From sequence record OQ790161.1: a DNA stretch of 64,000 nt; one strand, given 5' to 3'. A program made the translations under genes and the position numbers. The notes below the pieces were generated by a model. That model worked only from the letters and a program-made list of their open reading frames with translations. It did no database searches and was not told where the DNA came from. Below, piece by piece: positions 3,222-14,921 of the stretch (positions are counted from its first letter, which is position 1; each line of letters starts with the position of its first letter).

Positions 3222-3464
3222 ATGTGTGACTGCCGTAAAGAACGCGATCCGCTCAAGGAAGCATGGCTTATCATCCTGTGCAGTTTCATCGGGTTTCCGA
3301 TGTTCTTCATCGGTCTGGTCTTACTGGCTACGGGTGCTGCCTCCGGACTGTTTCCGATGACGTTCATCGGTGGTGTCCTGATGGGAATCGGTGGTGCGCT
3401 GCTGTGGTGGTTCTTCATGCTGTGCGGGTATCCATTCGCCAACGGCGGAATAGCACGCTGGTAA
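3222..3464 (+). CDS. Hypothetical membrane protein
   Basis: GAGGA RBS; two TM segments. Confidence 0.7.
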   Translation: MCDCRKERDPLKEAWLIILCSFIGFPMFFIGLVLLATGAASGLFPMTFIGGVLMGIGGALLWWFFMLCGYPFANGGIARW

Positions 3465-3523
3465 CAAACAAACGGGACGGTCTTCGGGCCGTCCCATTTA
3501 TTCCATCGACCAAGGTAACAAAC

Positions 3524-4021
3524 ATGAAGTCCAATCCGTTCTCTTTCAGCTGGCGTGCGTTCGTGACCGCACTGACCGTGTTCGCAGTGATCATCCTGGC
3601 CACCCAGTCGCCTTCGGCGTATGCCAACGACAAGGTGATCGGTGAAGTCACCACCGGCACCCAGATCCTCGGCCCCAACCACACCGTGGGTGTGATCCGC
3701 TTCCAGGATCCCAAGATCCCCAACGCATGGTGCTATCTGGCCCGTGCCCAGACCGGCGGCTTTGCAGCCAACTTCGGTATGGCCGAGGATCCTTCCGAGT
3801 TCACCATCGACTGTTTCTCCAAGGGCGTACTGAAACTGCCCGCAGGCCTGCCGGCCAAGGAAGAAGTCTCGCGCACCAGCCGTTCGGCGGTGTTCAAGGA
3901 AATGATCGTCCAGCGCTTCGTGGATGCCGAAGCACAGCGTGTGGTGTATCTGGTCTACACCCGCCGCCTGTGGGACGGTTCGCCGAAGAATGCGATGTCC
4001 TCGATCCCCTACGAGCCCTGA
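3524..4021 (+). CDS. creA: CreA-family exported protein
   Basis: Signal peptide then IGEV..., FQDP..., CYLARAQTGG, AEDPSEFTIDC, LVYTRRLWDGSPKNAMS; collinear with E. coli CreA motifs (CYVSRAKTGG, GSPKNAIS). Confidence 0.88.
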   Translation: MKSNPFSFSWRAFVTALTVFAVIILATQSPSAYANDKVIGEVTTGTQILGPNHTVGVIRFQDPKIPNAWCYLARAQTGGFAANFGMAEDPSEFTIDCFSKGVLKLPAGLPAKEEVSRTSRSAVFKEMIVQRFVDAEAQRVVYLVYTRRLWDGSPKNAMSSIPYEP

Positions 4022-5083: not shown

Positions 5084-5332
5084 ATGAAGAGTTGGCGCAT
5101 TGTACAGTTCTGCGTTCAACTTGGACGCTTCACCCGTGCCTTGTGGAACGGTAAGCTGGTGATGAACGAACGCGGGGAAATCCACGCAGTCAACGTCACC
5201 GTTGGAGAGATCGCATCGTCTTCGGGCAACATCTCCCATCTGCCCATCCGCAAGTTCAAGCTCAAGGGCGGCAAACGATCACCGGAAGTGGCGGAATTGG
5301 TAGTCGCAGCAGATTCAAAATCTGCCGGGTAA
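5084..5332 (+). CDS. Hypothetical protein; 3' end overlaps tRNA-Leu
   Basis: AAGG RBS, 2 nt after upstream stop. Confidence 0.5.
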   Translation: MKSWRIVQFCVQLGRFTRALWNGKLVMNERGEIHAVNVTVGEIASSSGNISHLPIRKFKLKGGKRSPEVAELVVAADSKSAG

Positions 5333-5366
5333 CACCGTGAGGGTTCGAGTCCCTCTTTCCGGACCA
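5282..5366 (+). tRNA. tRNA-Leu(CAA)
   Basis: ccggaag/tttccgg acceptor, gcaga-tt-CAA-aa-tctgc, long variable arm, T-arm, CCA. Confidence 0.95.
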
Positions 5367-5465
5367 AACCCAAAGTGGGGCTAGAAGATCCGTGCAAGTC
5401 GGAGTGCCCTATTTGGTCACCCTCGCCCCTGGGAATCTGGGGTACCAAATAACAAAGGACTTCGA

Positions 5466-6017
5466 GTGGGTATTGAAATCGAACGGAAGTTCTTAGTGGA
5501 CGTGACGAGGCTCAGCTCGTCCCTCAACGCAACAAAGCCCGACTCCGTCAAGCGACTGAGCCAGTGGTACTTCAGCAGTCCGGAAACTCTGGAAGGTGGT
5601 CAGAAGGCGTCCGTCCGTGTCCGTACTGAACGACAGATCACCCTCTGGTCGATGGAGCGTCGTGAAGCTCTTGGCTTTGTCGATGATTACGAGAGCTGGT
5701 TGAACATCAAGTCCGTCGGTACCGGTCACACGCGCCAAGAGTACGAATATTCCATCCCCAACGAAGACGCCGACCTGATGCAGGCTTTGGCCGTGGGGGC
5801 GATCGTCACCAAAGATCGCGTGGTCATCAAACAAGGCGACCTGAAATGGGAGATCGATTTCTTCCTCGGTGAGAACAAAGGTCTGGCGGTGGCGGAGATT
5901 GAATTGCCCTGTCCGGACTATCCGTTTGAGAAGCCTGATTGGATTCTCAAAGAAGTTACCGATGATCTGCGTTACACCAACGTGGCATTGTCCTCCACAC
6001 CCTTCCAGAGTTGGTAA
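5466..6017 (+). CDS. CYTH-domain (triphosphate tunnel) enzyme
   Basis: N-terminal EIERKFL (ExExK), RxR, EYEY, WEIDFF, AEIEL, YTN motifs. Confidence 0.9.
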   Translation: MGIEIERKFLVDVTRLSSSLNATKPDSVKRLSQWYFSSPETLEGGQKASVRVRTERQITLWSMERREALGFVDDYESWLNIKSVGTGHTRQEYEYSIPNEDADLMQALAVGAIVTKDRVVIKQGDLKWEIDFFLGENKGLAVAEIELPCPDYPFEKPDWILKEVTDDLRYTNVALSSTPFQSW

Positions 6018-6028
6018 TGCTCCATTGC

Positions 6029-6189
6029 GTTAAGATGTAAGGCGGAAAGCTTGGCGGTCCTAAAAACGGGGAACATGTGGCCCCATCCGAGACTGTTAGG
6101 TTCACAAGGGGTGTCGCACTGCCCACTGACGAGTGGGATTACGGTGCGCGAAACAGACAGTGGTCAGGCTCTCCTCCTTACATCTTAAC
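6029..6189 (+). ncRNA. Candidate structured ncRNA B (~161 nt)
   Basis: Perfect 14-bp terminal stem gttaagatgtaagg/ccttacatcttaac with internal hairpins. Confidence 0.55.
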
Positions 6190-6210
6190 CAACCGAGTAT
6201 GTAGTCCCCC

Positions 6211-6510
6211 ATGAACAATACCATTCGAAAGATCCGCACGATTTCCACGGAAGGAATGGTACAGCAGGACATTGAAGTCCCCGAGGACAAGGGCCTCTAC
6301 GGCGAGCACATCATGGCCAAGGTTGTTGAGCTCTTCGAAGCCCAACCTGACGCCAAGGCCGTGCTGGTCGGCATCGATGTGAGTGGGTTCCGCTCGCGTC
6401 GTGAAGAAGGGGAGACTTTCAGCGCATTCATCGCCGCCGGCTTCGGCTGGAGTCTGGTGGGCTGGAATCCGAAGTCAGCATTCAGCGGCGTCCTTGTGAC
6501 CCGCAAGTAA
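6211..6510 (+). CDS. Hypothetical protein
   Basis: ORF with phage-typical codon usage. Confidence 0.7.
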   Translation: MNNTIRKIRTISTEGMVQQDIEVPEDKGLYGEHIMAKVVELFEAQPDAKAVLVGIDVSGFRSRREEGETFSAFIAAGFGWSLVGWNPKSAFSGVLVTRK

Positions 6511-6564
6511 CATCTCCATCCTAGACCGTTGGTTTTGGAGAGGACCGAGAAGTTCAAGTTCGTT

Positions 6565-6704
6565 CGATGAGTGGTGGAATTGGTATACGCGTGGCCGACC
6601 CCTTAATGGGGAAAAGTTGCAGCCAGAGGGGGAACTACGCTCTCTGGTGCCTGGCAGTGGGTGCGGCCTTAGGCCATCTGCGGGTTCGACTCCCGCCTCA
6701 GAAA
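6565..6704 (+). ncRNA. tRNA-Leu-like RNA with ~75-nt insert in anticodon arm; weak acceptor stem, no CCA
   Basis: Leu-type D-arm gtg-gaattggtata-cgc, tggcc/ggcca stem, T-arm gcggg-ttcgact-cccgc. Confidence 0.6.
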
Positions 6705-6856
6705 GCACTGTCCGAACGAATGAACTTGAATGAAGTGTCTAGGCCCGGAGTTGTTGAACCAGAGAGAGCTAAGGGTGCAGGCTCTGGGGATCGTGACTAT
6801 TGTAAGCCTGGTACGTCGCTAGTCACCGACGTCGTGGAAACCCGTCACAAGCAATA

Positions 6857-6885
6857 CCCCCCACCCTTCGGGGTGGGGGCTTATG
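6857..6885. terminator. UUCG hairpin followed by TATG
   Basis: ccccccaccc-ttcg-gggtggggg-c-ttatg. Confidence 0.7.
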
Positions 6886-6938
6886 CTGTCAATTTCCACA
6901 TAGAGGTCACAGACTGTGAACCTTTTCGAGACACCAAC

Positions 6939-7226
6939 ATGACTCTGTGGCAAACCATCCTCGTAATCGTTTATATGGGAGGCGCGTGGTCCTGTTTCAC
7001 ACAGGGCATGGAGCGCAACGCCGATGTAAAGTCCAAGCTGATCATGGGCTACCCTGTCCACCCCATGACCATGTCTTTCCACAAGTTGTTCTACGCCAAC
7101 ATGGTGCAGATCATCATAACGGCAGTGCTGTGGCCGATCACCATGATCATCGGCATTGGCCTGCTGTTGTACAACCTCCACAAGTTCAAACGCGAGTTCA
7201 ACGTCCGCCGCGGTCAGCGCAAGTAA
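6939..7226 (+). CDS. Hypothetical membrane protein
   Basis: ATG at 6939 chosen because the upstream part of the track ORF runs through RNA elements and a terminator; two TM segments. Confidence 0.7.
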   Translation: MTLWQTILVIVYMGGAWSCFTQGMERNADVKSKLIMGYPVHPMTMSFHKLFYANMVQIIITAVLWPITMIIGIGLLLYNLHKFKREFNVRRGQRK

Positions 7227-7340
7227 CCCGCAGGACTGAGTTAGTTTTTACCGAGCTGGCTGACACTGTGTAGGTAGCAGCCTGCTTTCTACAACTAGGG
7301 GATAGACCCCTTTCTCCACCCACCATAGATAGGAATTATC

Positions 7341-8426
7341 ATGGACACGCAACACGATTACTCGGTTTTCATTGGACGCTTCGAACCTTTCCACAACGGC
7401 CACCTGGCCGTGGCTCGCAAGGCACTGGAGATGGGCAAGAAGCTGATCGTCATCATCGGTACCGCCAACCGCCCGCGCACGATCAAGAACCCCTGGGTTG
7501 TTGAAGAACGCGCGGTCATGATCCGTTCGGCCTTGGCCGAATACGGTGATCGGGTCATCATCGGACAGGTGCGTGATCACCTGTACAACGAAGACCTGTG
7601 GCTTGCTGATGTGCAGCGCGTGGTGCGCGACGCGGTGGCTTTCGACACGGAAGCATCCGAAAAGCCCATCATTCGCATGATCGGTCAGTCCAAGGACGAC
7701 TCGAGTTACTACCTCAAGAAGTTCCCGCAATGGCCGGTGGTCGATGTGCAGCACACCACTGTACTCTCGGCGACGGATCTGCGCCGGTACCTCTTCGAGG
7801 CCCGCAAGGTGGAGACCCATGGTGGCATGATGTATATCCGTGCCAACGTCCCGGCGTCCACCTACGCCATGATCGATGCTTTCCGTCACAGCTCGCCGGA
7901 CTACGACCAGCTGTTGCGTGAGTACGATTTCATCAAGGACTACAAGGCTGGCTGGGCTGGTTCTCCGTACGATGTGTCCTTCAACACGGCCGACTCTGTC
8001 GTGACGTGCGCCGGCCACATCCTGTTGATCAAGCGCAAGCCTGAACCCGGTAAGGGCCTGTGGGCACTACCCGGTGGTTTCATCAAGCCGCACCAGACGG
8101 CGCTGCAAGCGTCCCTGGCCGAGCTGCGTGAAGAAACCCGCCTGAAGGTTCCTGAAAAGGTGATCCTCGGTTCGCTGCGCAATCAGCGTCTGTACGATCA
8201 TCCCGAACGCAGTCTGCGCGGCCGGACGTTTACCCAAACGTTCCACTACGCACTCGACTTTGATGAACGACCCAAGGTCCGTGGTGGCGATGACGCCAAA
8301 GAAGCAAGGTGGTTCCTCTTCAGCGAAGCCCTGGAAATGGGTGCGCGCCTGTTCGAGGACCACTTGGACATCTTCGAGAACGAGCTGGGCATGCATGCTC
8401 CGCCGCTTCCCTCGCTGGTGATCTAA
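7341..8426 (+). CDS. nadM: Bifunctional NMN adenylyltransferase / Nudix (ADP-ribose) hydrolase
   Basis: FIGRFEPFHNGH (HxGH), LSATDLR, Nudix box GGF-x-ELREET, FEDH C-terminus. Confidence 0.93.
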   Translation: MDTQHDYSVFIGRFEPFHNGHLAVARKALEMGKKLIVIIGTANRPRTIKNPWVVEERAVMIRSALAEYGDRVIIGQVRDHLYNEDLWLADVQRVVRDAVAFDTEASEKPIIRMIGQSKDDSSYYLKKFPQWPVVDVQHTTVLSATDLRRYLFEARKVETHGGMMYIRANVPASTYAMIDAFRHSSPDYDQLLREYDFIKDYKAGWAGSPYDVSFNTADSVVTCAGHILLIKRKPEPGKGLWALPGGFIKPHQTALQASLAELREETRLKVPEKVILGSLRNQRLYDHPERSLRGRTFTQTFHYALDFDERPKVRGGDDAKEARWFLFSEALEMGARLFEDHLDIFENELGMHAPPLPSLVI

Positions 8427-8518
8427 ATAACACCGTTCCAAAACCCACCGCAACATCACGTGAAACAGCCGGAAGGGTAGACCTCCGGTTCACACCCGAC
8501 ATGAAGGAACTTCAGTCA

Positions 8519-9907
8519 ATGAACATCGAAAACCCGATCCTGAACACCGACAGCTACAAGGCCAGCCACTGGACCCAGTACCCCGCCAACACGGATGCGA
8601 CGTTCTTCTACGCCGAATCCCGCGGTGGTGTGTATGACCAGACGGTGTGGTTCGGCCTGCAGGCCATCCTCAAGGCGAACCTGCGACCGATCACCCACGA
8701 CGATGTCAATGAAGCTGCGATGCTGTACGCAGCGCACGGCGAGCCGTTCAATGTGGACGGCTGGCGTTACATCGTTGACAAGCACAATGGTCGCCTGCCC
8801 CTGCGCATCCGCGCTGCGGCCGAAGGCTTGGTGGTGCCGGTGCATAACGCACTGTACACCGTTGAGTCCACCGACCCGAAGTGCTATTGGCTGCCCTCGT
8901 ATCTCGAAACCATCCTGATGCGCACGTGGTACCCCACCACTGTCGCCACGGTCAGCTGGGCGTGCAAGCAAGTCATCCGCTCGTACCTTCAGCAGACCAG
9001 CGACATCCCCGACGACGTCCTGCCCTTCAAGCTCCACGACTTCGGCGCGCGTGGCGTGTCGAGCACCGAGAGCTCGGGCCTGGGCGGCATGGCTCACCTG
9101 GTGAACTTCATGGGCACGGACACCGTGCTCGGCCTGGTGTACGCTACGCGCTTCTACAAGGCCGGCATGGCCGGCTTCTCGGTCCCTGCGGCCGAGCATG
9201 CCACGATCACCCCGTGGGGTCGTGACAACGAAGTGGAAGCCTACCGCAACATGCTGAAGCAATTCGGCCGTGAAGGCGGTATCGTCTCGGTGGTATCGGA
9301 CAGCTACGACATCTACCACGCTATTAGCGAGCACTGGGGTAAAACCCTTCGCGACGACGTGATCAACTCCGGGGCAACCTTGGTGATCCGTCCGGACTCG
9401 GGCGAACCGGTGGAAGTCGTACTGAAGTGCTTGGAACTCATCGATGCTGCCTTTGGCAGTACGGTCAACTCCAAGGGCTTCAAGGTCCTCAACCATGTGC
9501 GCGTGCTGCAAGGCGACGGCATCGATCCGGCCATGCTGGAGGCAATCCTCCAGGCCTGTACCCAGCGGGGTTACTCCGCTGAGAACGTGGTCTTCGGCAT
9601 GGGCGGCGGGCTGCTCCAGAAGGTCAACCGTGACACGCAAAAGTTTGCACTCAAGTGCTCGGCTGCGCGCGTCAATGGCGAATGGATCGACGTCTACAAG
9701 GACCCGATCACCGATAGCGGCAAGCGCTCCAAGCGTGGCCGGCTGTCGCTGTTCCGCCATCGCGAATACGGCACCTTCGGGACCTTCCGCACTGATGGCC
9801 AGCAGACGATCCCCGCTGGCTATGATGATGCGATGGTGACTGTGTGGGTAAACGGCGAGTTCGTGCAGGAATGGACCTTTGACCAGGTTCGTGCCAACGC
9901 AGGCTAA
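8519..9907 (+). CDS. nadV: Nicotinamide phosphoribosyltransferase
   Basis: TDSYKASH, WYPTTVAT, LHDFGARG, AAEH, VVSDSYD, IRPDSG, QGDGI, FGMGGGLLQ, KSKRGRL. Confidence 0.95.
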   Translation: MNIENPILNTDSYKASHWTQYPANTDATFFYAESRGGVYDQTVWFGLQAILKANLRPITHDDVNEAAMLYAAHGEPFNVDGWRYIVDKHNGRLPLRIRAAAEGLVVPVHNALYTVESTDPKCYWLPSYLETILMRTWYPTTVATVSWACKQVIRSYLQQTSDIPDDVLPFKLHDFGARGVSSTESSGLGGMAHLVNFMGTDTVLGLVYATRFYKAGMAGFSVPAAEHATITPWGRDNEVEAYRNMLKQFGREGGIVSVVSDSYDIYHAISEHWGKTLRDDVINSGATLVIRPDSGEPVEVVLKCLELIDAAFGSTVNSKGFKVLNHVRVLQGDGIDPAMLEAILQACTQRGYSAENVVFGMGGGLLQKVNRDTQKFALKCSAARVNGEWIDVYKDPITDSGKRSKRGRLSLFRHREYGTFGTFRTDGQQTIPAGYDDAMVTVWVNGEFVQEWTFDQVRANAG

Positions 9908-9927
9908 CCGCGCAATGCCTTTGTAAC

Positions 9928-10045
9928 GGCCGACCCCTTTTTCCGAATGCCGGCTAAAGACCCGGCGGTAGAATTTGGGGAAGGCCACCTTCGGAAAACT
10001 GTAGGTGGATAACCGAAGTAAGTCGCTCTGGCTGCCCTTGCGGCC
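9928..10045 (+). ncRNA. Structured intergenic element downstream of nadV
   Basis: ggcc-ga-cccc/gggg-aa-ggcc, gccgg/ccggc, and competing ccacct/aggtgg, cttcgg/ccgaag pairings. Confidence 0.4.
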
Positions 10046-10152
10046 AAAACTATCTGACTAGTGGTTGACATGGGTTGGCACAGCGTTTGAGCGACACCTG
10101 CCTTCTCGGATCAACGGAACCTTCACCCTCACCCCTTTTAATGGACGGACCA

Positions 10153-10491
10153 ATGAACGACGCAGTTGCAGAAACCTCGGAAGTTGAACAGCTGCGCGTG
10201 CAGTTGGCCGGTTGTGGTGTGGTTGCCATGTGCAACACCCGCGAGACCCTGAAGCAGCAGATGCCCAGCCGTGAGTCCTTCGGTTACTCGCAGTCACTGC
10301 AGGAAGTCCACGATGGCGTGCTGCGTGAGATCAATGAACGCGAACGTGCCGGCGCCTACCGTGAGGCGATCGAGAAGATCGCCCCGTTGGCCAACAAGGA
10401 AACCCTGATGGCGCTCGCCAGTACGTTCCACGATGGTCCGTACCGGGACCCGCAGCTGGTTGAGATACTGCACGCGGCCAGCCAGAAATAG
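10153..10491 (+). CDS. Hypothetical protein
   Basis: GGACGG RBS before ATG 10153. Confidence 0.7.
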   Translation: MNDAVAETSEVEQLRVQLAGCGVVAMCNTRETLKQQMPSRESFGYSQSLQEVHDGVLREINERERAGAYREAIEKIAPLANKETLMALASTFHDGPYRDPQLVEILHAASQK

Positions 10492-10493
10492 AG

Positions 10494-10771
10494 TTGGGTT
10501 AGTCCGCCCCAGTGGGATAGGGCAAGATGTGTGTTAGGCCTACGCGCCCCCAGAGTCCTCTCCAGGACCTTTCCGCTATCAACGGATCGACCACACTTGT
10601 TCTTGAACATAAAGCGGACACTAAAACAATCACGGAGTAACATCGCGGCCTCCGCGGTGCCGGATTGTTAGTAGGGGGTAAAGTCGCAGGGCCCTGCCTC
10701 CGATGCGCTAGCATCACCCCTATTTGGATTGGTCTCCTTAGTCTGTAACACATTGCGTTCTTCAGACCCAA
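10494..10771 (+). ncRNA. Candidate multi-domain ncRNA D (~280 nt)
   Basis: ttgggt/acccaa closure; gtccgc/gcggac, aacaatc/gattgtt, catcgcgg/ccgcggtg, tagggg/ccccta helices. Confidence 0.55.
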
Positions 10772-10810
10772 ACGTCAGTGTGTTATGGAGTAAGTGACCT
10801 AGGAAAGGCC

Positions 10811-11224
10811 ATGATCGCATTTGAGGAACCTATGATCGAATTGACTCGTCAGCAACAGAACTTGTCTGCGCTGCGTCATCCCCAAGTGGGTGACCGTTGG
10901 CTGGAGCGCGGTTTCCAGCCAGCAGGTGTGGTACGCGCAGTGATCTTCGGTCGCTACGTCATGGTCGACTTACAAAGCAAGCCTGAGATCAAGTACTGGA
11001 GTCTGGCCGAATACGCCAACCACTTCAAGTACAAGTCCATGGATGCAACCTGGGCCGACGTCGAACGCTCGCCGCATCCACTGACGAACCGGGACGCACT
11101 CAAGCAGATCCTGTACTTCTTCCATCGCCGCTGGCAACAGCAGTGGCAAGCGCTGAAGGGACCGTTCCCCAAGACGTTCAACATCTTGGGTTTGAAGGTG
11201 ACGCTGGAACGAACCAAACGTTAA
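10811..11224 (+). CDS. Hypothetical protein
   Basis: AGGAAAGG RBS. Confidence 0.7.
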   Translation: MIAFEEPMIELTRQQQNLSALRHPQVGDRWLERGFQPAGVVRAVIFGRYVMVDLQSKPEIKYWSLAEYANHFKYKSMDATWADVERSPHPLTNRDALKQILYFFHRRWQQQWQALKGPFPKTFNILGLKVTLERTKR

Positions 11225-11245
11225 ACTTTACACCTGCGTTTAATC

Positions 11246-11539
11246 ATGCGAGGCCACATGCAACGTTGCGCTGAATGCGGTTACCACACGCCGTGGGGTG
11301 AGTCACTCAAGCACTTCATTGGGTGCGAGCACACCAGCTCACATGGCAACGGACAAGCACAGGCATTATCTGACCTCCTGTCGGGAAAAGCCGAGCGTGC
11401 AGGTCTGAGCCGTGCCGATCAAGATCACACCTTCGAACAGTTCAAGCGTCTCTTCGGTGACCAACCGAAACTCGCAAGTCCACTGGTCGTTGGACTCGAT
11501 CAGAAACTCGTGAAACATCTGTCGGTAAATTTGCATTAG
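11246..11539 (+). CDS. Hypothetical protein with CxxC motif
   Basis: CAECG...C/H residues. Confidence 0.6.
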   Translation: MRGHMQRCAECGYHTPWGESLKHFIGCEHTSSHGNGQAQALSDLLSGKAERAGLSRADQDHTFEQFKRLFGDQPKLASPLVVGLDQKLVKHLSVNLH

Positions 11540-11559
11540 CAAACTGCCTATGGTATGTA
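11531..11559 (+). promoter_or_regulatory. Sigma70-like promoter upstream of tRNA cluster
   Basis: TTGCAT-17 nt-TATGTA with TG-N extension; TATGGTATGTAA recurs at 61807. Confidence 0.5.
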
Positions 11560-11615
11560 ACACACCTCTGCCGCAGCGCAGAGTAATACCCTGTGCCCTA
11601 AATTGGGCACAACAC

Positions 11616-11706
11616 GGATCGATGGCAGAGTCTGGCTTATCGCACCTGTCTCGAAAACAGGAGTGGGGGAAACCCACCGTAGGTTCAAATCCTACTCGGT
11701 CCGCCA
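11616..11706 (+). tRNA. tRNA-Ser(CGA)
   Basis: cctgt-ct-CGA-aa-acagg, long variable arm, CCA. Confidence 0.95.
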
Positions 11707-11711
11707 CATGA

Positions 11712-11828
11712 AACCCTCTAAAGCATCGCAACGCATCGGCACGTGAAACCGATCGTATACTCCGCGCGCCGCTCCCTCGGAGCACCGCCGGGAGGTGTAG
11801 ATGGTCGACCACTACGGTCGATGGGGTT
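11712..11828 (+). ncRNA. Structured spacer RNA between tRNA-Ser and tRNA-Gln
   Basis: aaccc/gggtt closure with atcgg/ccgat, gctcc/ggagc, cacc/ggtg, tcgacc/ggtcga hairpins. Confidence 0.45.
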
Positions 11829-11840
11829 AACCTTTTACGA

Positions 11841-11918
11841 TGGGGGAGTCGTCTAGCGGCCAAGGACCCCAGGTTTTGATCCTGGTATTCGTAGGTTCGA
11901 ATCCTACCTCCTCAGCCA
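11841..11918 (+). tRNA. tRNA-Gln(TTG)
   Basis: ccagg-tt-TTG-at-cctgg, CCA. Confidence 0.93.
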
Positions 11919-11971
11919 CACACAAGGGACCTTCGGGTCCCGCAGCGCCTAGCGCTTAGTTTTTTGTTTCA

Positions 11972-12047
11972 GGGTCGGTAGCTCAATTGGCAGAGCGGCG
12001 AGCTCCAAATTCGTCGGTTGTGGGTTCAAGTCCTTCCCGGCCCGCCA
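11972..12047 (+). tRNA. tRNA-Trp(CCA)
   Basis: gcgag-ct-CCA-aa-ttcgt, gggtcgg/ccggccc, CCA. Confidence 0.92.
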
Positions 12048-12069
12048 TAGTTACAACAACAGTTTCACT

Positions 12070-12159
12070 GGGTTGGTAGTTCGTTAACGGTAGGCGAGCC
12101 AGACTGTAAATCTGGAGCCCATAGTGGCCTTATAGGTTCGATTCCTTTACAACCCACCA
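12070..12159 (+). tRNA. tRNA-Tyr(GTA)
   Basis: ccaga-ct-GTA-aa-tctgg, long variable arm, CCA. Confidence 0.92.
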
Positions 12160-12168
12160 CGTTTCAAC

Positions 12169-12244
12169 ACAGCGTTCGTCTAGCGGTTTAGGATAACGGC
12201 CTTTCACGTCGTCAACACGGGTTCGAATCCCGTACGCTGTACCA
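12169..12244 (+). tRNA. tRNA-Glu(TTC)
   Basis: acggc-ct-TTC-ac-gtcgt, acagcgt/acgctgt, CCA. Confidence 0.95.
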
Positions 12245-12266
12245 CATTCACAAGGCTCGTTACGAC

Positions 12267-12512
12267 ATGACACGTAAAAAGTTCAAAGACCTCGAGAAGA
12301 TGGTCGATCACATTCTGGCTGATCCCAGAATGCAGAACGAAGCAGTCATGATCAACGGCGCGCCTATCAACACCGATTATCTCAAGGAATGCTTGACCGC
12401 TTTCCGTCGCATTGAAATGCGACTGATTTTGGGTGAGTCCGTTTCTCCGCTAGAACGATTGGCGGTTGAACTGATCATGCAGACATTCGGCGTTGAGTTT
12501 CAACCAAAGTAA
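12267..12512 (+). CDS. Hypothetical protein within tRNA cluster
   Basis: ORF fills the spacer between tRNA-Glu and tRNA-Ile. Confidence 0.7.
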   Translation: MTRKKFKDLEKMVDHILADPRMQNEAVMINGAPINTDYLKECLTAFRRIEMRLILGESVSPLERLAVELIMQTFGVEFQPK

Positions 12513-12515
12513 CAC

Positions 12516-12591
12516 TGTGGATTAGCTCAGTTGGTAGAGCGTTCCCCTGATAAGGGAAAGGTCGATGGTTCGAGTCCATTATCCGCAACCA
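12516..12591 (+). tRNA. tRNA-Ile(GAT)
   Basis: ttccc-ct-GAT-aa-gggaa, CCA. Confidence 0.95.
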
Positions 12592-12598
12592 GTTTCAA

Positions 12599-12688
12599 GG
12601 GCATGTGTGTGAGCGGTTTATACAAGCGGGTTGCTAACTCGCCGACCCTTAAAAAGGTCCGTAGGTTCGAATCCTACCGTGCCCGCCA
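12599..12688 (+). tRNA. tRNA-Ser(GCT)
   Basis: gcggg-tt-GCT-aa-ctcgc, long variable arm, CCA. Confidence 0.95.
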
Positions 12689-12890
12689 TCTTCGTGGAGA
12701 TCCAGGTATCGAGGCCTGGCAGGGGCTCCCATCGGGGGTAGTGCCTGTAGCGACAATAGAGAGCACCGCGATCCCCCGCACTTTCGTAGAGCTGCAAGGC
12801 TTCGGCCGGACTCTACGTCTTTGCGGGTTTAAAATGTAGGACAGTATCTTCCAGACAGCAGTAAGCTGATTCACCCGTCTGGAGATAACC

Positions 12891-13124
12891 ATGTTTGACT
12901 ATACGAAGTACTGTCCTGTTTGTGATTCACTCGACACTTGGGTTCCCTTCGGTCCCGAGGACCTGACCCTCACGTGCGGGTCGTTCTCTGAAACGATGAA
13001 GGCCGTGTACGGCTCCATCTGTACTAACTGTGGTGATCGTCGCCTGAGCGATGAAGACCATGAACGGTATGCGCAGATGGGTGACCGAGTGGTCCTCAAG
13101 TGGCAAGCCTCAAACGCGTCTTAG
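12891..13124 (+). CDS. Stand-alone YgiT/MqsA-type zinc-finger domain protein
   Basis: YCPVCD...(~33 aa)...ICTNCGD followed by a helix, the layout of the MqsA N-terminal domain; no HTH; GGAG RBS. Confidence 0.65.
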   Translation: MFDYTKYCPVCDSLDTWVPFGPEDLTLTCGSFSETMKAVYGSICTNCGDRRLSDEDHERYAQMGDRVVLKWQASNAS

Positions 13125-13190
13125 CTCAGTTGGCAGAGCAGGAGAATCATAATCTCTTTGTCCGGGGTTCGAATCCCTGAGACGCGACCA
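13115..13190 (+). tRNA. tRNA-Met/Ile2(CAT), non-initiator
   Basis: ggaga-at-CAT-aa-tctct, paired C1-G72, CCA. Confidence 0.9.
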
Positions 13191-13192
13191 AA

Positions 13193-13333
13193 ACAAGAAC
13201 CACAACTGCGGTCATCGGTCCGCAGCCCGCATAGGCCTCGGTGGGGTGGAAAATCTGAAGTACTGTCATCCGGTACTTTGGTGTCCGGCAAGCCACCCAC
13301 GCAAGTGGGACTGTCGGCCACTGTGGTTCTTGT
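13193..13333 (+). ncRNA. Candidate structured ncRNA C (~141 nt)
   Basis: Perfect 12-bp terminal stem acaagaaccaca/tgtggttcttgt; ctgcgg/ccgcag, aagtac/gtactt, cccac-GCAA-gtggg hairpins. Confidence 0.55.
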
Positions 13334-13490
13334 CTGTCCCTGAGTCAAGGCAGGTAGTCCTTGGACGGAAGCATGCTCCGCATTACCTAGAGCGAAAGGG
13401 TAGACGTTAAACCGCTGGAGGCGAACCAAGCCGACCGGGGATACGCATGTAAGTGTGGGTTGGTAGTGACCGCCTTCGGGCGGTTGCGTT
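13334..13490 (+). ncRNA. Structured element E ending in a UUCG hairpin
   Basis: tcaagg/ccttgg, gcatgc-tcc/gga-tac-gcatgt, ttacc/ggtag, accgcc-ttcg-ggcggt. Confidence 0.4.
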
Positions 13491-13502
13491 TAGTGTACTA
13501 AG

Positions 13503-13580
13503 GGTTGTCCGTAGCTCAGCTGGTAAGAGCGCCGCACTGTGAATGCGGAGGTCATGGGTTCAAACCCCATCGGGCACCCC
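13503..13580 (+). tRNA. tRNA-His(GTG), CCA not encoded
   Basis: ccgca-ct-GTG-aa-tgcgg; G-1:C73 pattern; ends CCT. Confidence 0.88.
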
Positions 13581-13600
13581 TTAGTGCATTATCAGTTTCA

Positions 13601-13690
13601 GGGTCAGTGGGTGAGAGGCTTAAACCAGCGAGTTGGAAGCTCGCCGCGCCCTGCGGGGCGCCGTAGGTTCGAATCCTACCTAATCCGCCA
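13601..13690 (+). tRNA. tRNA-Ser(GGA)
   Basis: gcgag-tt-GGA-ag-ctcgc, long variable arm, CCA. Confidence 0.93.
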
Positions 13691-13698
13691 GTTTCAAT

Positions 13699-13837
13699 GG
13701 CGTTGCTAGCTCAGTTGGTAGAGCGCTCGTATATATGGGGTTCAACTCCCCACTTGCCCACCGTGCGAAAGCACGTCTGGGCGAGCACTGGTTAAAAAGA
13801 CGAGAGGTCGTGGGTTCGAATCCCACAATACGCCCCA
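13699..13837 (+). ncRNA. tRNA-like RNA with 69-nt anticodon loop (insert or intron)
   Basis: D-arm gctc-agttggta-gagc, stem ctcgt/acgag, variable AGGTC, T-arm gtggg-ttcgaat-cccac, CCA. Confidence 0.65.
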
Positions 13838-13848
13838 ATGTTTCTATA

Positions 13849-13917
13849 GCGAATGTAGCTCAGTTTGGGAGAGCACCTGTCTCTTTGTGTCGCGGGTTCG
13901 AGTCCCGCCGTGCTGCC
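13849..13917 (+). pseudogene. Degenerate tRNA shell (anticodon arm shortened)
   Basis: Intact D-arm and T-arm, only 17 nt between them, poor acceptor stem. Confidence 0.6.
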
Positions 13918-13923
13918 TGTGTG

Positions 13924-13998
13924 CTGCACGTAGCTCAGCTGGTAGAGCAAAAGACAACTAACAGGGGGTCACAGGTTCGATTCCTGTCCTTCGCGCCA
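13924..13998 (+). pseudogene. Degenerate tRNA shell (unpaired anticodon arm)
   Basis: Intact D-arm, T-arm acagg-ttcgatt-cctgt and CCA; anticodon and acceptor stems do not pair. Confidence 0.6.
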
Positions 13999-14007
13999 AG
14001 TTTCAAA

Positions 14008-14084
14008 GCGTGTGTAACTCAGTCTGGTAGAGTCGCAGCCTTCCACGCTGTTGGTCACGAGTTCGAATCTCGTCGCACGCTCCA
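14008..14084 (+). tRNA. tRNA-Gly(TCC)
   Basis: gcagc-ct-TCC-ac-gctgt, gcgtgtg/cgcacgc, CCA. Confidence 0.95.
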
Positions 14085-14112
14085 ATTAGTAGATCCGTGA
14101 AACGCATTTGCC

Positions 14113-14188
14113 GGTCAGATGGCAGAGTGGTAATGCACCGGATTGCAAATCCGCGTACTCGCTGGTTCGAACCCAGCTCTGACCTCCA
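14113..14188 (+). tRNA. tRNA-Cys(GCA)
   Basis: cgga-tt-GCA-aa-tccg, ggtcaga/tctgacc, U73, CCA. Confidence 0.95.
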
Positions 14189-14210
14189 CCACCTCACACA
14201 GGACTTCGCC

Positions 14211-14405
14211 ATGTCGCGTCATCAGCGCTACTATGATGGACTGAATCAGCTGACCACGGAACAAGGTCTGACCACGCGCGTTGCTAACGACGTGCTCTAC
14301 TTCCGCCAGCAAGCCAACTGGAGTCAAGGGTTGGAAGACCAGTTCATCGAACAGGCTCGCGATGGTGAGGTTCCTGACATCACCCAGATCGGACGTTCGA
14401 CATGA
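14211..14405 (+). CDS. Hypothetical protein
   Basis: AGGA RBS, ATG 14211. Confidence 0.7.
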   Translation: MSRHQRYYDGLNQLTTEQGLTTRVANDVLYFRQQANWSQGLEDQFIEQARDGEVPDITQIGRST

Positions 14406-14728
14406 CCCAGAAAGTCAAGTACACCTTCACCGCAGTCACCGCCCGTCCCAATCCGGTCATTGGGATTCCCGAAGGTCTCGAGCTCACCCGTGAGCAGTTC
14501 TTCGAAGCGCTGGCCAATGCCCGCGTGACCCGGCTGTACCTGGACAGCAACACCTTCGCTCAGGTCAACTACGGGTTCGTCAAGAAGGACAACACGCTGG
14601 TGGCTGACCTGCTGCCGCACTTCCCCGATGTCTCGATCACGTTGCTGGCCAACGGCGAGGCGATCATGGAAGTGTCCAAGGATTCGCAGTACCAGCCTAA
14701 CGCCTTCGCCATCGACGTCGAGCTGTAA
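14402..14728 (+). CDS. Hypothetical protein
   Basis: ATGA overlap with upstream gene. Confidence 0.75.
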   Translation: MTQKVKYTFTAVTARPNPVIGIPEGLELTREQFFEALANARVTRLYLDSNTFAQVNYGFVKKDNTLVADLLPHFPDVSITLLANGEAIMEVSKDSQYQPNAFAIDVEL

Positions 14729-14738
14729 CGGTTGTTGC

Positions 14739-14833
14739 CCCTACCGACAGGTAGGGAACTTCCTTGGCGCCCAGGGGTACGGAGAGTTTGCCTATCATCT
14801 CGCCGTAACGACGTCAAGGCAGGTTGGGATAGG
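14739..14833 (+). ncRNA. Structured element upstream of tRNA-Asn (possible pseudoknot)
   Basis: ccctacc/ggtaggg, ccttgg/ccaggg, tacgg/ccgta hairpins; loop cctatc complementary to gatagg. Confidence 0.4.
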
Positions 14834-14845
14834 TTTCAGTTTTGA

Positions 14846-14921
14846 GGTTCATTAGCTCAGTCGGTAGAGCATGGCACTGTTAATGCCAGGGTCGTAGGTT
14901 CGAATCCTACATGAACCGCCA
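14846..14921 (+). tRNA. tRNA-Asn(GTT)
   Basis: tggca-ct-GTT-aa-tgcca, ggttcat/atgaacc, CCA. Confidence 0.96.

Follow-up and report, generated by a model that had tools for sequence, protein, structure and literature searches.

The window analysed here is a 64-kb stretch of the genome of the Xanthomonas jumbo phage RTH11 (GenBank OQ790161.1, a circular record of 312 kb), in which a window position equals the record position minus 62,000. It holds 14 transfer RNA (tRNA) genes as called by ARAGORN and Rfam, all within positions 5282–14921, and none of the 14 is annotated in the GenBank record. At the locus considered, the gene order is tRNA-His, tRNA-Ser(GGA), E1, E2, tRNA-Gly(UCC) and tRNA-Cys, where E1 (13700–13837; 138 nucleotides, nt) and E2 (150 nt) are tRNA-like genes whose anticodon loop is occupied by a second tRNA-like module. 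E1 is the main subject; it is compared with E2, with a third element, E3 (~6565–6704), and with elements of G001, a phage contig of 310,882 base pairs (bp) in the IMG/VR database that is related to RTH11 and that carries the homologues E1' and E2' and an extra element, N1. The heptamer GTTTC[AT]A occurs seven times in the 64 kb, and six of these copies (at 12161, 12497, 12592, 13691, 13840 and 14000) lie in the tRNA cluster directly beside the ends of a tRNA, of E1 or of E2, with just one copy elsewhere. Such spacers flank E1 and E2 as they do the true tRNAs, and to judge from its placement the heptamer is a candidate processing signal of a polycistronic precursor. Together with a terminator-like hairpin at 13466–87, upstream of tRNA-His, the spacers would be consistent with co-transcription and tRNA-type processing.

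Seen from its ends, E1 is built like a tRNA: acceptor stem, D-arm, T-arm, variable loop and 3' CCA are all there (Table 1). An earlier note, made from the letters of this DNA alone, had described here a D-arm, an anticodon stem, an AGGTC loop, a T-arm, a CCA end, a 69-nt loop and two inner hairpins, and every one of these was recovered at the same positions, as was its count of four paired positions among the seven of the acceptor stem (13700–06 with 13827–33). The four pairs (G1-C72, C2-G71, G3-C70 and U4-A69) also occur in E1', and in E1 a fifth, G13699-C13834, is possible. The anticodon loop measures 69 nt (13731–13799), not 7 nt.

Table 1. Positions of the parts of E1, of E2 and the spacers in the window, and of YrlA-like RNAs in other phages (locus label before the colon).
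Feature	Position	Strand	Remarks
Spacer GTTTCAA	13691–13697	+	between tRNA-Ser(GGA) and E1; probable precursor-processing spacer
Outer acceptor 5' strand gcgttgc	13700–13706	+	pairs with 13827–33 at 4/7 positions
Outer D-arm gctc-agttggta-gagc	13709–13724	+	canonical; matches Rfam tRNA model positions 8–25; 4/4 pairs retained in G001
Outer anticodon stem 5' strand ctcgt	13726–13730	+	five Watson-Crick pairs with 13800–04, invariant in G001
A/U-rich 5' hinge atata	13731–13735	+	unpaired; sequence varies (T13732C in metagenome variant, 'aga' in G001)
Inner T-arm tgggg-ttcaact-cccca	13736–13752	+	5-bp stem, T-loop consensus; kept in G001, closing U-A changed to U.G
Closed acceptor-like long hairpin, cttgccc/gggcgag then cgtgc-GAAA-gcacg	13753–13785	+	in minimum free energy structures of E1 and E1'
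Stemless D-loop mimic	13786–13799	+	ACTGGTT (13787–93) invariant in G001, then aaaaag
Outer anticodon stem 3' strand acgag	13800–13804	+	partner of 13726–30
Variable loop AGGTC	13805–13809	+	same in G001
Outer T-arm gtggg-ttcgaat-cccac	13810–13826	+	two double changes in G001 (G-C to A-U, U-A to C-G)
Outer acceptor 3' strand aatacgc, discriminator C73, encoded CCA	13827–13837	+	acceptor 13827–33; C73 and CCA 13834–37
Spacer GTTTCTA	13840–13846	+	between E1 and E2
E2	13849–13998	+	tRNA shell; anticodon loop is a complete permuted tRNA-like module
YrlA-like RNAs of Tabio and Usme (small Xanthomonas/Xylella phages), XaC1 (jumbo) and Gurke	L002:1481–1583, 1947–2055; L003:1489–1584, 1716–1822, 1965–2073; L004:2994–3090; L005:2962–3101, 3438–3589		most 37–52 bits

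The insert that fills this loop is a tRNA-like module whose parts are circularly permuted. Read from 5' to 3', it consists of a T-arm, a 7-bp helix in the acceptor position that is extended to ~13–14 bp and capped by a GNRA loop, and the sequence cACUGGUU without a D-stem; the cap stays GNRA in both phages (GAAA in RTH11, GCAA in G001). The minimum free energy (MFE) structure of E1 is this nested fold, at -57.2 kcal/mol (z = -3.96 against shuffled sequences). Apart from the 14 called tRNAs, it is in these elements that perfect T-arm motifs cluster, with two in E1, two in E2 and one in E3. The anticodon loop of E1 is thus replaced by a second tRNA-like module, and therefore the RNA has two tRNA 'elbows' and no anticodon, so that it cannot read codons.

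A pattern search of viral contigs retrieved permuted genes of transfer-messenger RNA (tmRNA) in which T-arm, hairpin and ACUGGUU follow each other as in E1, with ACTGGTT likewise placed after the 5' strand of the acceptor. The architecture of the insert is likened to the tRNA-like domain of tmRNA because this order and the ACUGGUU agree: in the permuted two-piece tmRNA (RF04321) the succession is T-arm, acceptor 3' strand, intervening loop, acceptor 5' strand and a stemless (A/C)ACUGGUU. Such likeness in order and in part of the sequence could mean that E1 is tmRNA-like, or that it imitates the tRNA-like domain of tmRNA as a decoy, and that it acts in or against trans-translation; this is nevertheless highly improbable. 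Matches to tmRNA in Rfam reach only 21 and 21.6 bits (the latter with the permuted model, over 13736–93) against a cut-off of 47, and the UCGAC that follows GGUU in tmRNA is missing. In contrast to tmRNA, E1 has no mRNA-like part, no tag reading frame, no pseudoknots and no alanine identity pair (its inner acceptor pair is G3-C70, not G3.U70), and its intervening loop is a stable GNRA hairpin where that of tmRNA is an excised spacer; the inner acceptor, being closed by this hairpin, is therefore not chargeable. A gene for SmpB is absent from both RTH11 and G001 by Pfam search.

The same nesting is found in E2, there with a complete permuted module. The E2 shell comprises an acceptor stem (gcgaatg/ccttcgc, six of seven positions paired) followed by GCCA, a D-arm, a 5-bp anticodon stem (cctgt/acagg), the variable loop GGGTC and a T-arm; the insert runs through a 4-bp stem, a variable loop, a T-arm, an acceptor hairpin of seven positions with six pairs, UA and a D-arm. 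The Rfam model of YrlA (RF02553) covers this insert over the full model length with 45 bits, whereas the tandem tRNAs of the cluster score just 18–27 bits with it. A nested-structure model derived from E2 aligns E2' at 94 bits. Between the two sequences 95% of the cells are paired, and 14 of 41 pairs have changed on both sides and are paired still, a result reached by none of 500 shuffles and compared with 0–3 such pairs in slid controls. Among the doubly changed pairs, the outer anticodon stem and the inner stem account for three each and the inner acceptor for five. The alignment of E2 with E2' was fitted to the model, which biases it toward the structure; the effect is large nonetheless.

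E1 does not belong to the tRNAs, the YrlA RNAs, the tmRNAs, the group I introns or the bulge-helix-bulge introns. Under standard settings it is called a tRNA neither by ARAGORN nor by Rfam, and its best match to the tRNA model RF00005 is partial, with 20.4 bits over model positions 8–63 against a gathering cut-off of 29 bits. The permuted tRNA-like domain of YrlA is present in E1, without the D-stem, and complete in E2, and both fall short of the YrlA cut-off of 69 bits (21.9 bits for the E1 region). For the group I introns, no Rfam match to Intron_gpI was obtained at E1 even with E-values up to 10, and the insert of 69 nt compares with a core of at least ~200 nt, in keeping with the earlier remark that it is too short. 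No bulge-helix-bulge exists at the borders, as had also been suspected: there is an unpaired A/U-rich internal loop (atata / aaaaag) and no 4-bp central helix. When introns were allowed, a check that had been proposed beforehand, ARAGORN called E1 tRNA-Gln(ctg), E2 tRNA-Leu(cag), and also the G001 homologues. The call for E1 is unconvincing and forced, as it relies on another anticodon stem and leaves an extra arm that is long and unpaired, and the tRNA-Leu(cag) model of E2 was likewise rejected as forced.

These calls bear on the possibility that E1 is an intron-containing tRNA gene, from which an as yet unknown protein pathway, or tRNA-processing enzymes of the host together with a ligase, would remove an insert of 59–69 nt after transcription and leave a normal tRNA such as tRNA-Gly(GCC). 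G001 lends this some substance: E1' has UUGCCAA, the loop of tRNA-Gly(GCC), directly 5' of the 3' strand of its anticodon stem, and its shell has G1-C72, C2-G71, G3-C70 and U73, the textbook identity set of tRNA-Gly. N1 retains CC...UCCAA around its complete inner tRNA, and E2' retains CUUAUAA. In RTH11, however, no exon junction turns the corresponding stretch UUAAAAAG into a canonical anticodon loop (7 nt, U33, purine 37); position 37 of E2 would be U in every case; and the implied insertion sites vary among the elements (31/32, ~33/34 and 38/39). Added to the missing bulge-helix-bulge and group I features, Pfam searches gave no match to tRNA_int_endo, RtcB, Rnl1 or the Rnl2 family in RTH11, and for the endonuclease and the Rnl2 family a search of G001 gave no match either. 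Compensatory evolution in E2, moreover, preserves the tRNA-like helices of the insert itself. Splicing is thus distinctly unlikely, and the protein-spliced intron turns out to be the weakest of the options that had been named at first, whereas a tRNA-scaffolded functional RNA and a nested tRNA fusion, the other two, agree with the permuted insert and with the same nesting in E2 and in the G001 elements, including N1. The retained former-loop sequences (UUGCCAA, CC...UCCAA, CUUAUAA) can be read as traces of the insertion of tRNA-like DNA into anticodon loops, and not as a sign of splicing today; the E1 shell is probably derived from tRNA-Gly, an origin that shell comparisons back weakly.

E1 was recovered in the GenBank genome, in an IMG/VR relative and in a separate metagenome contig, and Logan contigs of two metagenome runs span 13693–14106 without gaps. 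Because it is present in independent assemblies, E1 is not an assembly artefact, a possibility that had been raised as one that would undo the finding. A model made from E1 alone matches E1' in G001 over its full length with 100.8 bits, and comparison of the orthologous loci shows a nested gene in G001, not a normal tRNA. The nicotinate phosphoribosyltransferase of G001 is 92% identical to that of RTH11, and the tRNA cluster of G001 straddles the contig ends; an independent metagenome contig shows the stretch contiguously. There, tRNA-His is followed by N1, a UUCG-capped Ser-like tRNA, E2' and E1', so that the order of E1 and E2 differs from that in RTH11. LucasX, the closest named relative (NadM 64% identical), has neither E1 nor E2 at the syntenic locus.

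With such changes in content and order, E1 could be a non-functional chimera that arose among near-identical tandem tRNA genes, through illegitimate recombination or through repair triggered by an endonuclease, and that is now tolerated while it slowly decays. This explanation is unlikely. E1 and E1' are 78% identical, compared with 60–71% for the flanking open reading frames (ORFs) and 84–100% for true tRNAs, and through this 22% divergence all seven helices survive, with 92% of cells paired and one-sided changes that are mostly wobble-compatible. The GNRA cap and ACTGGTT are retained, as are the processing spacers. A variant that is ~97% identical to E1, from two metagenome runs, has three changes (C13761G, C13777T and T13778C) that re-register the long hairpin and leave it paired. 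The 14 compensated pairs of E2 also speak against decay. From these comparisons the nested class is concluded to be under structural selection, and E1 itself probably is as well.

Several points weigh against a maintained function of E1, and some of them would suit decay. The outer acceptor is weak, with four to five of seven pairs, for which decay could be the cause. Relative to G001, RTH11 has lost the GCC loop and U73, and the difference between C73 with UUAAAAAG in RTH11 and U73 with UUGCCAA in G001 fits a tRNA-Gly gene losing its function too. Doubly compensated pairs between E1 and E1' number just three, of which the outer T stem holds two and the long hairpin one. This is matched by 154 of 500 shuffles, so that covariation in E1 by itself is not significant; it is drawn from two or three sequences. 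The MFE structure of E1' contains the long hairpin and favours an alternative pairing of the two T-arms. N1 and the UUCG-capped Ser-like gene occur in G001 alone, the order of E1 and E2 is swapped, and in LucasX an unannotated HNH-like ORF lies beside a tRNA fragment. Finally, no homologue of E1 was found beyond the RTH11/G001 lineage in LucasX, XaC1, Gurke, ~300 further viral loci and one metagenome scan. Full-length matches to the model R1 in the complete genomes of RTH11, LucasX, G001, XaC1 and Gurke were limited to E1 and E1'; in exact and degenerate pattern scans of IMG/VR the G001 homologue was the sole relative of E1, the rest being permuted tmRNA genes and ordinary tandem tRNAs; and the metagenome scan returned a contig identical to G001 and one unrelated match. 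The model R2 found tandem tRNAs and nothing else in 80 further phage loci, a scan for D-arms closely followed by T-arms gave tRNA-like genes with a truncated anticodon arm and none that were nested, and the matches in wastewater runs labelled as RNA were tRNAs of other organisms. RNAalifold on raw MAFFT alignments put the stems out of register, and its result was not used.

Among known RNAs, E1 appears by analogy to be most like the tRNA-like domain of YrlA or of tmRNA fused into a tRNA. In the Y RNA YrlA (Chen et al. 2014, PMC4201824) a permuted tRNA-like domain is joined through an 'anticodon-stem' helix to a second module, as in E1 and E2. Unlike in YrlA, where the second module is the Ro60-binding stem, in E1 and E2 it is a complete tRNA shell, and E1 has no D-stem. 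Since no Ro60/TROVE match was found in RTH11, and only weak partial matches in 17 of 201 sampled genomes of the host family Xanthomonadaceae, E1 and E2 are not part of a classical Ro60/Y-RNA system. Free-standing YrlA-like RNAs, closed by a plain stem and unannotated, were also seen in the phages Tabio and Usme (50–52 bits), XaC1 (41) and the Brevundimonas phage Gurke (39), all below the cut-off of 69. Permuted tRNA-like domains of YrlA are handled by TruB, DusA and RNase P as well as by the enzyme that adds CCA, and the YrlA of M. smegmatis has a 7-bp acceptor-like stem that is cut by RNase P and gains CCA in vivo (PMC4201824). With this precedent, E1 and E2 might be precursors: after a cut by RNase P within the acceptor-like inner hairpin, trimming or the addition of CCA would give two pieces of tRNA size that remain paired as a domain-swapped two-piece particle with two acceptor ends. 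In E2' the inner acceptor hairpin is exactly 7 bp and closed by GCCA (discriminator plus CCA running into the 5' strand), and the inner acceptor of E2 in RTH11 also has seven positions with six pairs. The inner hairpin of E1, on the other hand, runs on as a 13–14-bp GNRA-capped helix; the 'ACC' after its seventh pair is not kept, being AGC in the metagenome variant; and the E1' helix is unbroken at the 7/8 boundary. Cleavage of the inner hairpin by RNase P is therefore plausible for E2 and not for E1, whose helix is continuous and capped and whose 'ACC' is unconserved, and as an account of both elements the two-piece particle is very unlikely. No Pfam match to PolyA_pol, the domain of CCA-adding enzymes, was found in RTH11.

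Three further comparisons help to place E1. In engineered 'tRNA scaffolds' the anticodon loop of a tRNA gives way to a cargo RNA, and the tRNA body ensures that the whole is correctly processed and stable; these constructs are artificial, whereas E1 occurs naturally, carries a cargo that is tRNA-like too, and would be processed like a tRNA. The species 1 (rnaC, 139 nt) and species 2 (rnaD) RNAs of phage T4 are likewise stable RNAs of unassigned function at the end of a phage tRNA cluster, and species 1 is about as long as E1 and has a T-arm in its tRNA-like 3' part. Species 1 differs in that it has a single T-arm and lacks both a nested permuted module and a canonical D-arm, and this different structure, together with the lack of sequence similarity, rules it out as a homologue of E1. 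Intron-containing and permuted tRNA genes, as found in archaea and red algae, also have extra sequence in the anticodon region and permuted parts; they depend, however, on a bulge-helix-bulge, whereas RTH11 shows no such motif, no splicing endonuclease match and no anticodon loop that could be rebuilt, and has a bacterial host.

Set against these alternatives, the explanation of E1 that is held to be somewhat likelier true than false is that of a real, selectively maintained gene for a 138-nt, non-decoding composite tRNA mimic that is processed like a tRNA. E1 would be excised from a polycistronic precursor in the same way as the neighbouring tRNAs, with RNase P forming the 5' end and trimming reaching the encoded CCA, and would accumulate as a stable RNA incapable of decoding. 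The tRNA shell would provide processing and stability, as in the engineered scaffolds. By mimicking a tRNA, E1 may then bind, titrate or recruit a host or phage factor that reads the tRNA body or elbow, the candidate partners being a tRNA-targeting defence nuclease and a tRNA processing or modifying enzyme. We infer from this architecture a decoy or adaptor role toward a factor that reads tRNA shape.

Other composite tRNA-like genes were observed in the window and in related phages. E3 (T-arm at 6680; LucasX L006:3558–3695) is a tRNA-Leu-derived gene with the D-arm GGTGGAATTGGTATAC, a ~75-nt hairpin insert, a degenerate acceptor stem and a flanking long-range helix, and it is conserved with changes in LucasX. 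The earlier note had ascribed to the element at 6565 the same layout as E1; it is indeed tRNA-like with a large insert, but it has no second T-arm and no CCA, so that the resemblance in layout is loose, and the true twin of E1 is E2. In N1 (L087:1992–2145, equal to G001 310654–310807; L260, reverse strand) a complete, normally ordered tRNA stands in the anticodon loop of a Gly-like shell that has a perfect 7-bp acceptor and U73-CCA; ARAGORN calls the inner tRNA Ile(AAU), with an unusual C33. The Ser-type tRNA-like gene of G001 (L089:59–169) has an extended, UUCG-capped anticodon stem and no anticodon; its variable arm is long and its acceptor stem perfect. In LucasX, a 120-nt element between tRNA-Thr and tRNA-Ser (L006:4825–4944) has a perfect outer acceptor (ggaccag/ctggtcc) and two T-arms, and is another composite tRNA-like gene. 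LucasX also carries an unannotated ORF resembling HNH endonucleases (L006:~10890–11310) upstream of tRNA-Gln and, downstream, an orphan tRNA 3' fragment with T-arm, acceptor and CCA (11395–11433), a combination that hints at endonuclease-driven remodelling of tRNA arrays. In unrelated viral contigs (IMG/VR L401, L397, L439 and L494) there are tRNA-like genes with a stub of 10–17 nt for the anticodon arm, each adjoining a normal tRNA, and tRNA look-alikes that lack an anticodon may be widespread among the tRNA arrays of phages.

Within the RTH11 cluster, a gene-free stretch of 314 nt between tRNA-Met and tRNA-His (13191–13504), with the terminator-like hairpin at its end, is 92% identical to G001, compared with 60–71% for the flanking ORFs, and to judge from this identity it probably represents a further conserved non-coding RNA or a regulatory region. 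Among ten small ORFs located in or near the tRNA cluster, none had a Pfam match with relevance to tRNA.

The nested architecture of E1 is so far known only from the RTH11/G001 lineage and is a new variation on known tRNA mimics; searches of the literature brought up no phage tRNA-like genes described as nested or double. In annotation, tRNA finders that tolerate introns will mislabel nested genes: with introns allowed, ARAGORN reports tRNA-Gln, tRNA-Leu, tRNA-Gly and tRNA-Ile. A wider proposal, tentative and rather doubtful, would be that RTH11-like jumbo phages encode an undescribed class of 'double-headed' tRNA mimics, in which tRNA shells carry a permuted, tmRNA-like or complete tRNA in the anticodon loop; the tRNA machinery of the host would produce and mature these RNAs, some of which RNase P might then cut into domain-swapped two-piece particles, and the phage would deploy them to block or divert a host system that recognises the shape of tRNA, for instance an anti-phage nuclease that cleaves tRNAs or a sensor for tRNA damage. 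The tRNA clusters of phages are usually seen as helpers in codon usage or as spares against anticodon nucleases, and the cluster of RTH11 adds to these the anticodon-less RNAs that carry a second tRNA-like body. If E1 and its relatives are functional, nature would be using the 'tRNA scaffold' trick of RNA engineers, and the tRNA mimicry known from Y RNAs would reach phages and hosts without Ro60; E1, E2 and N1 would then be a handle for finding the host tRNA-reading factor that a jumbo phage decoys or recruits.

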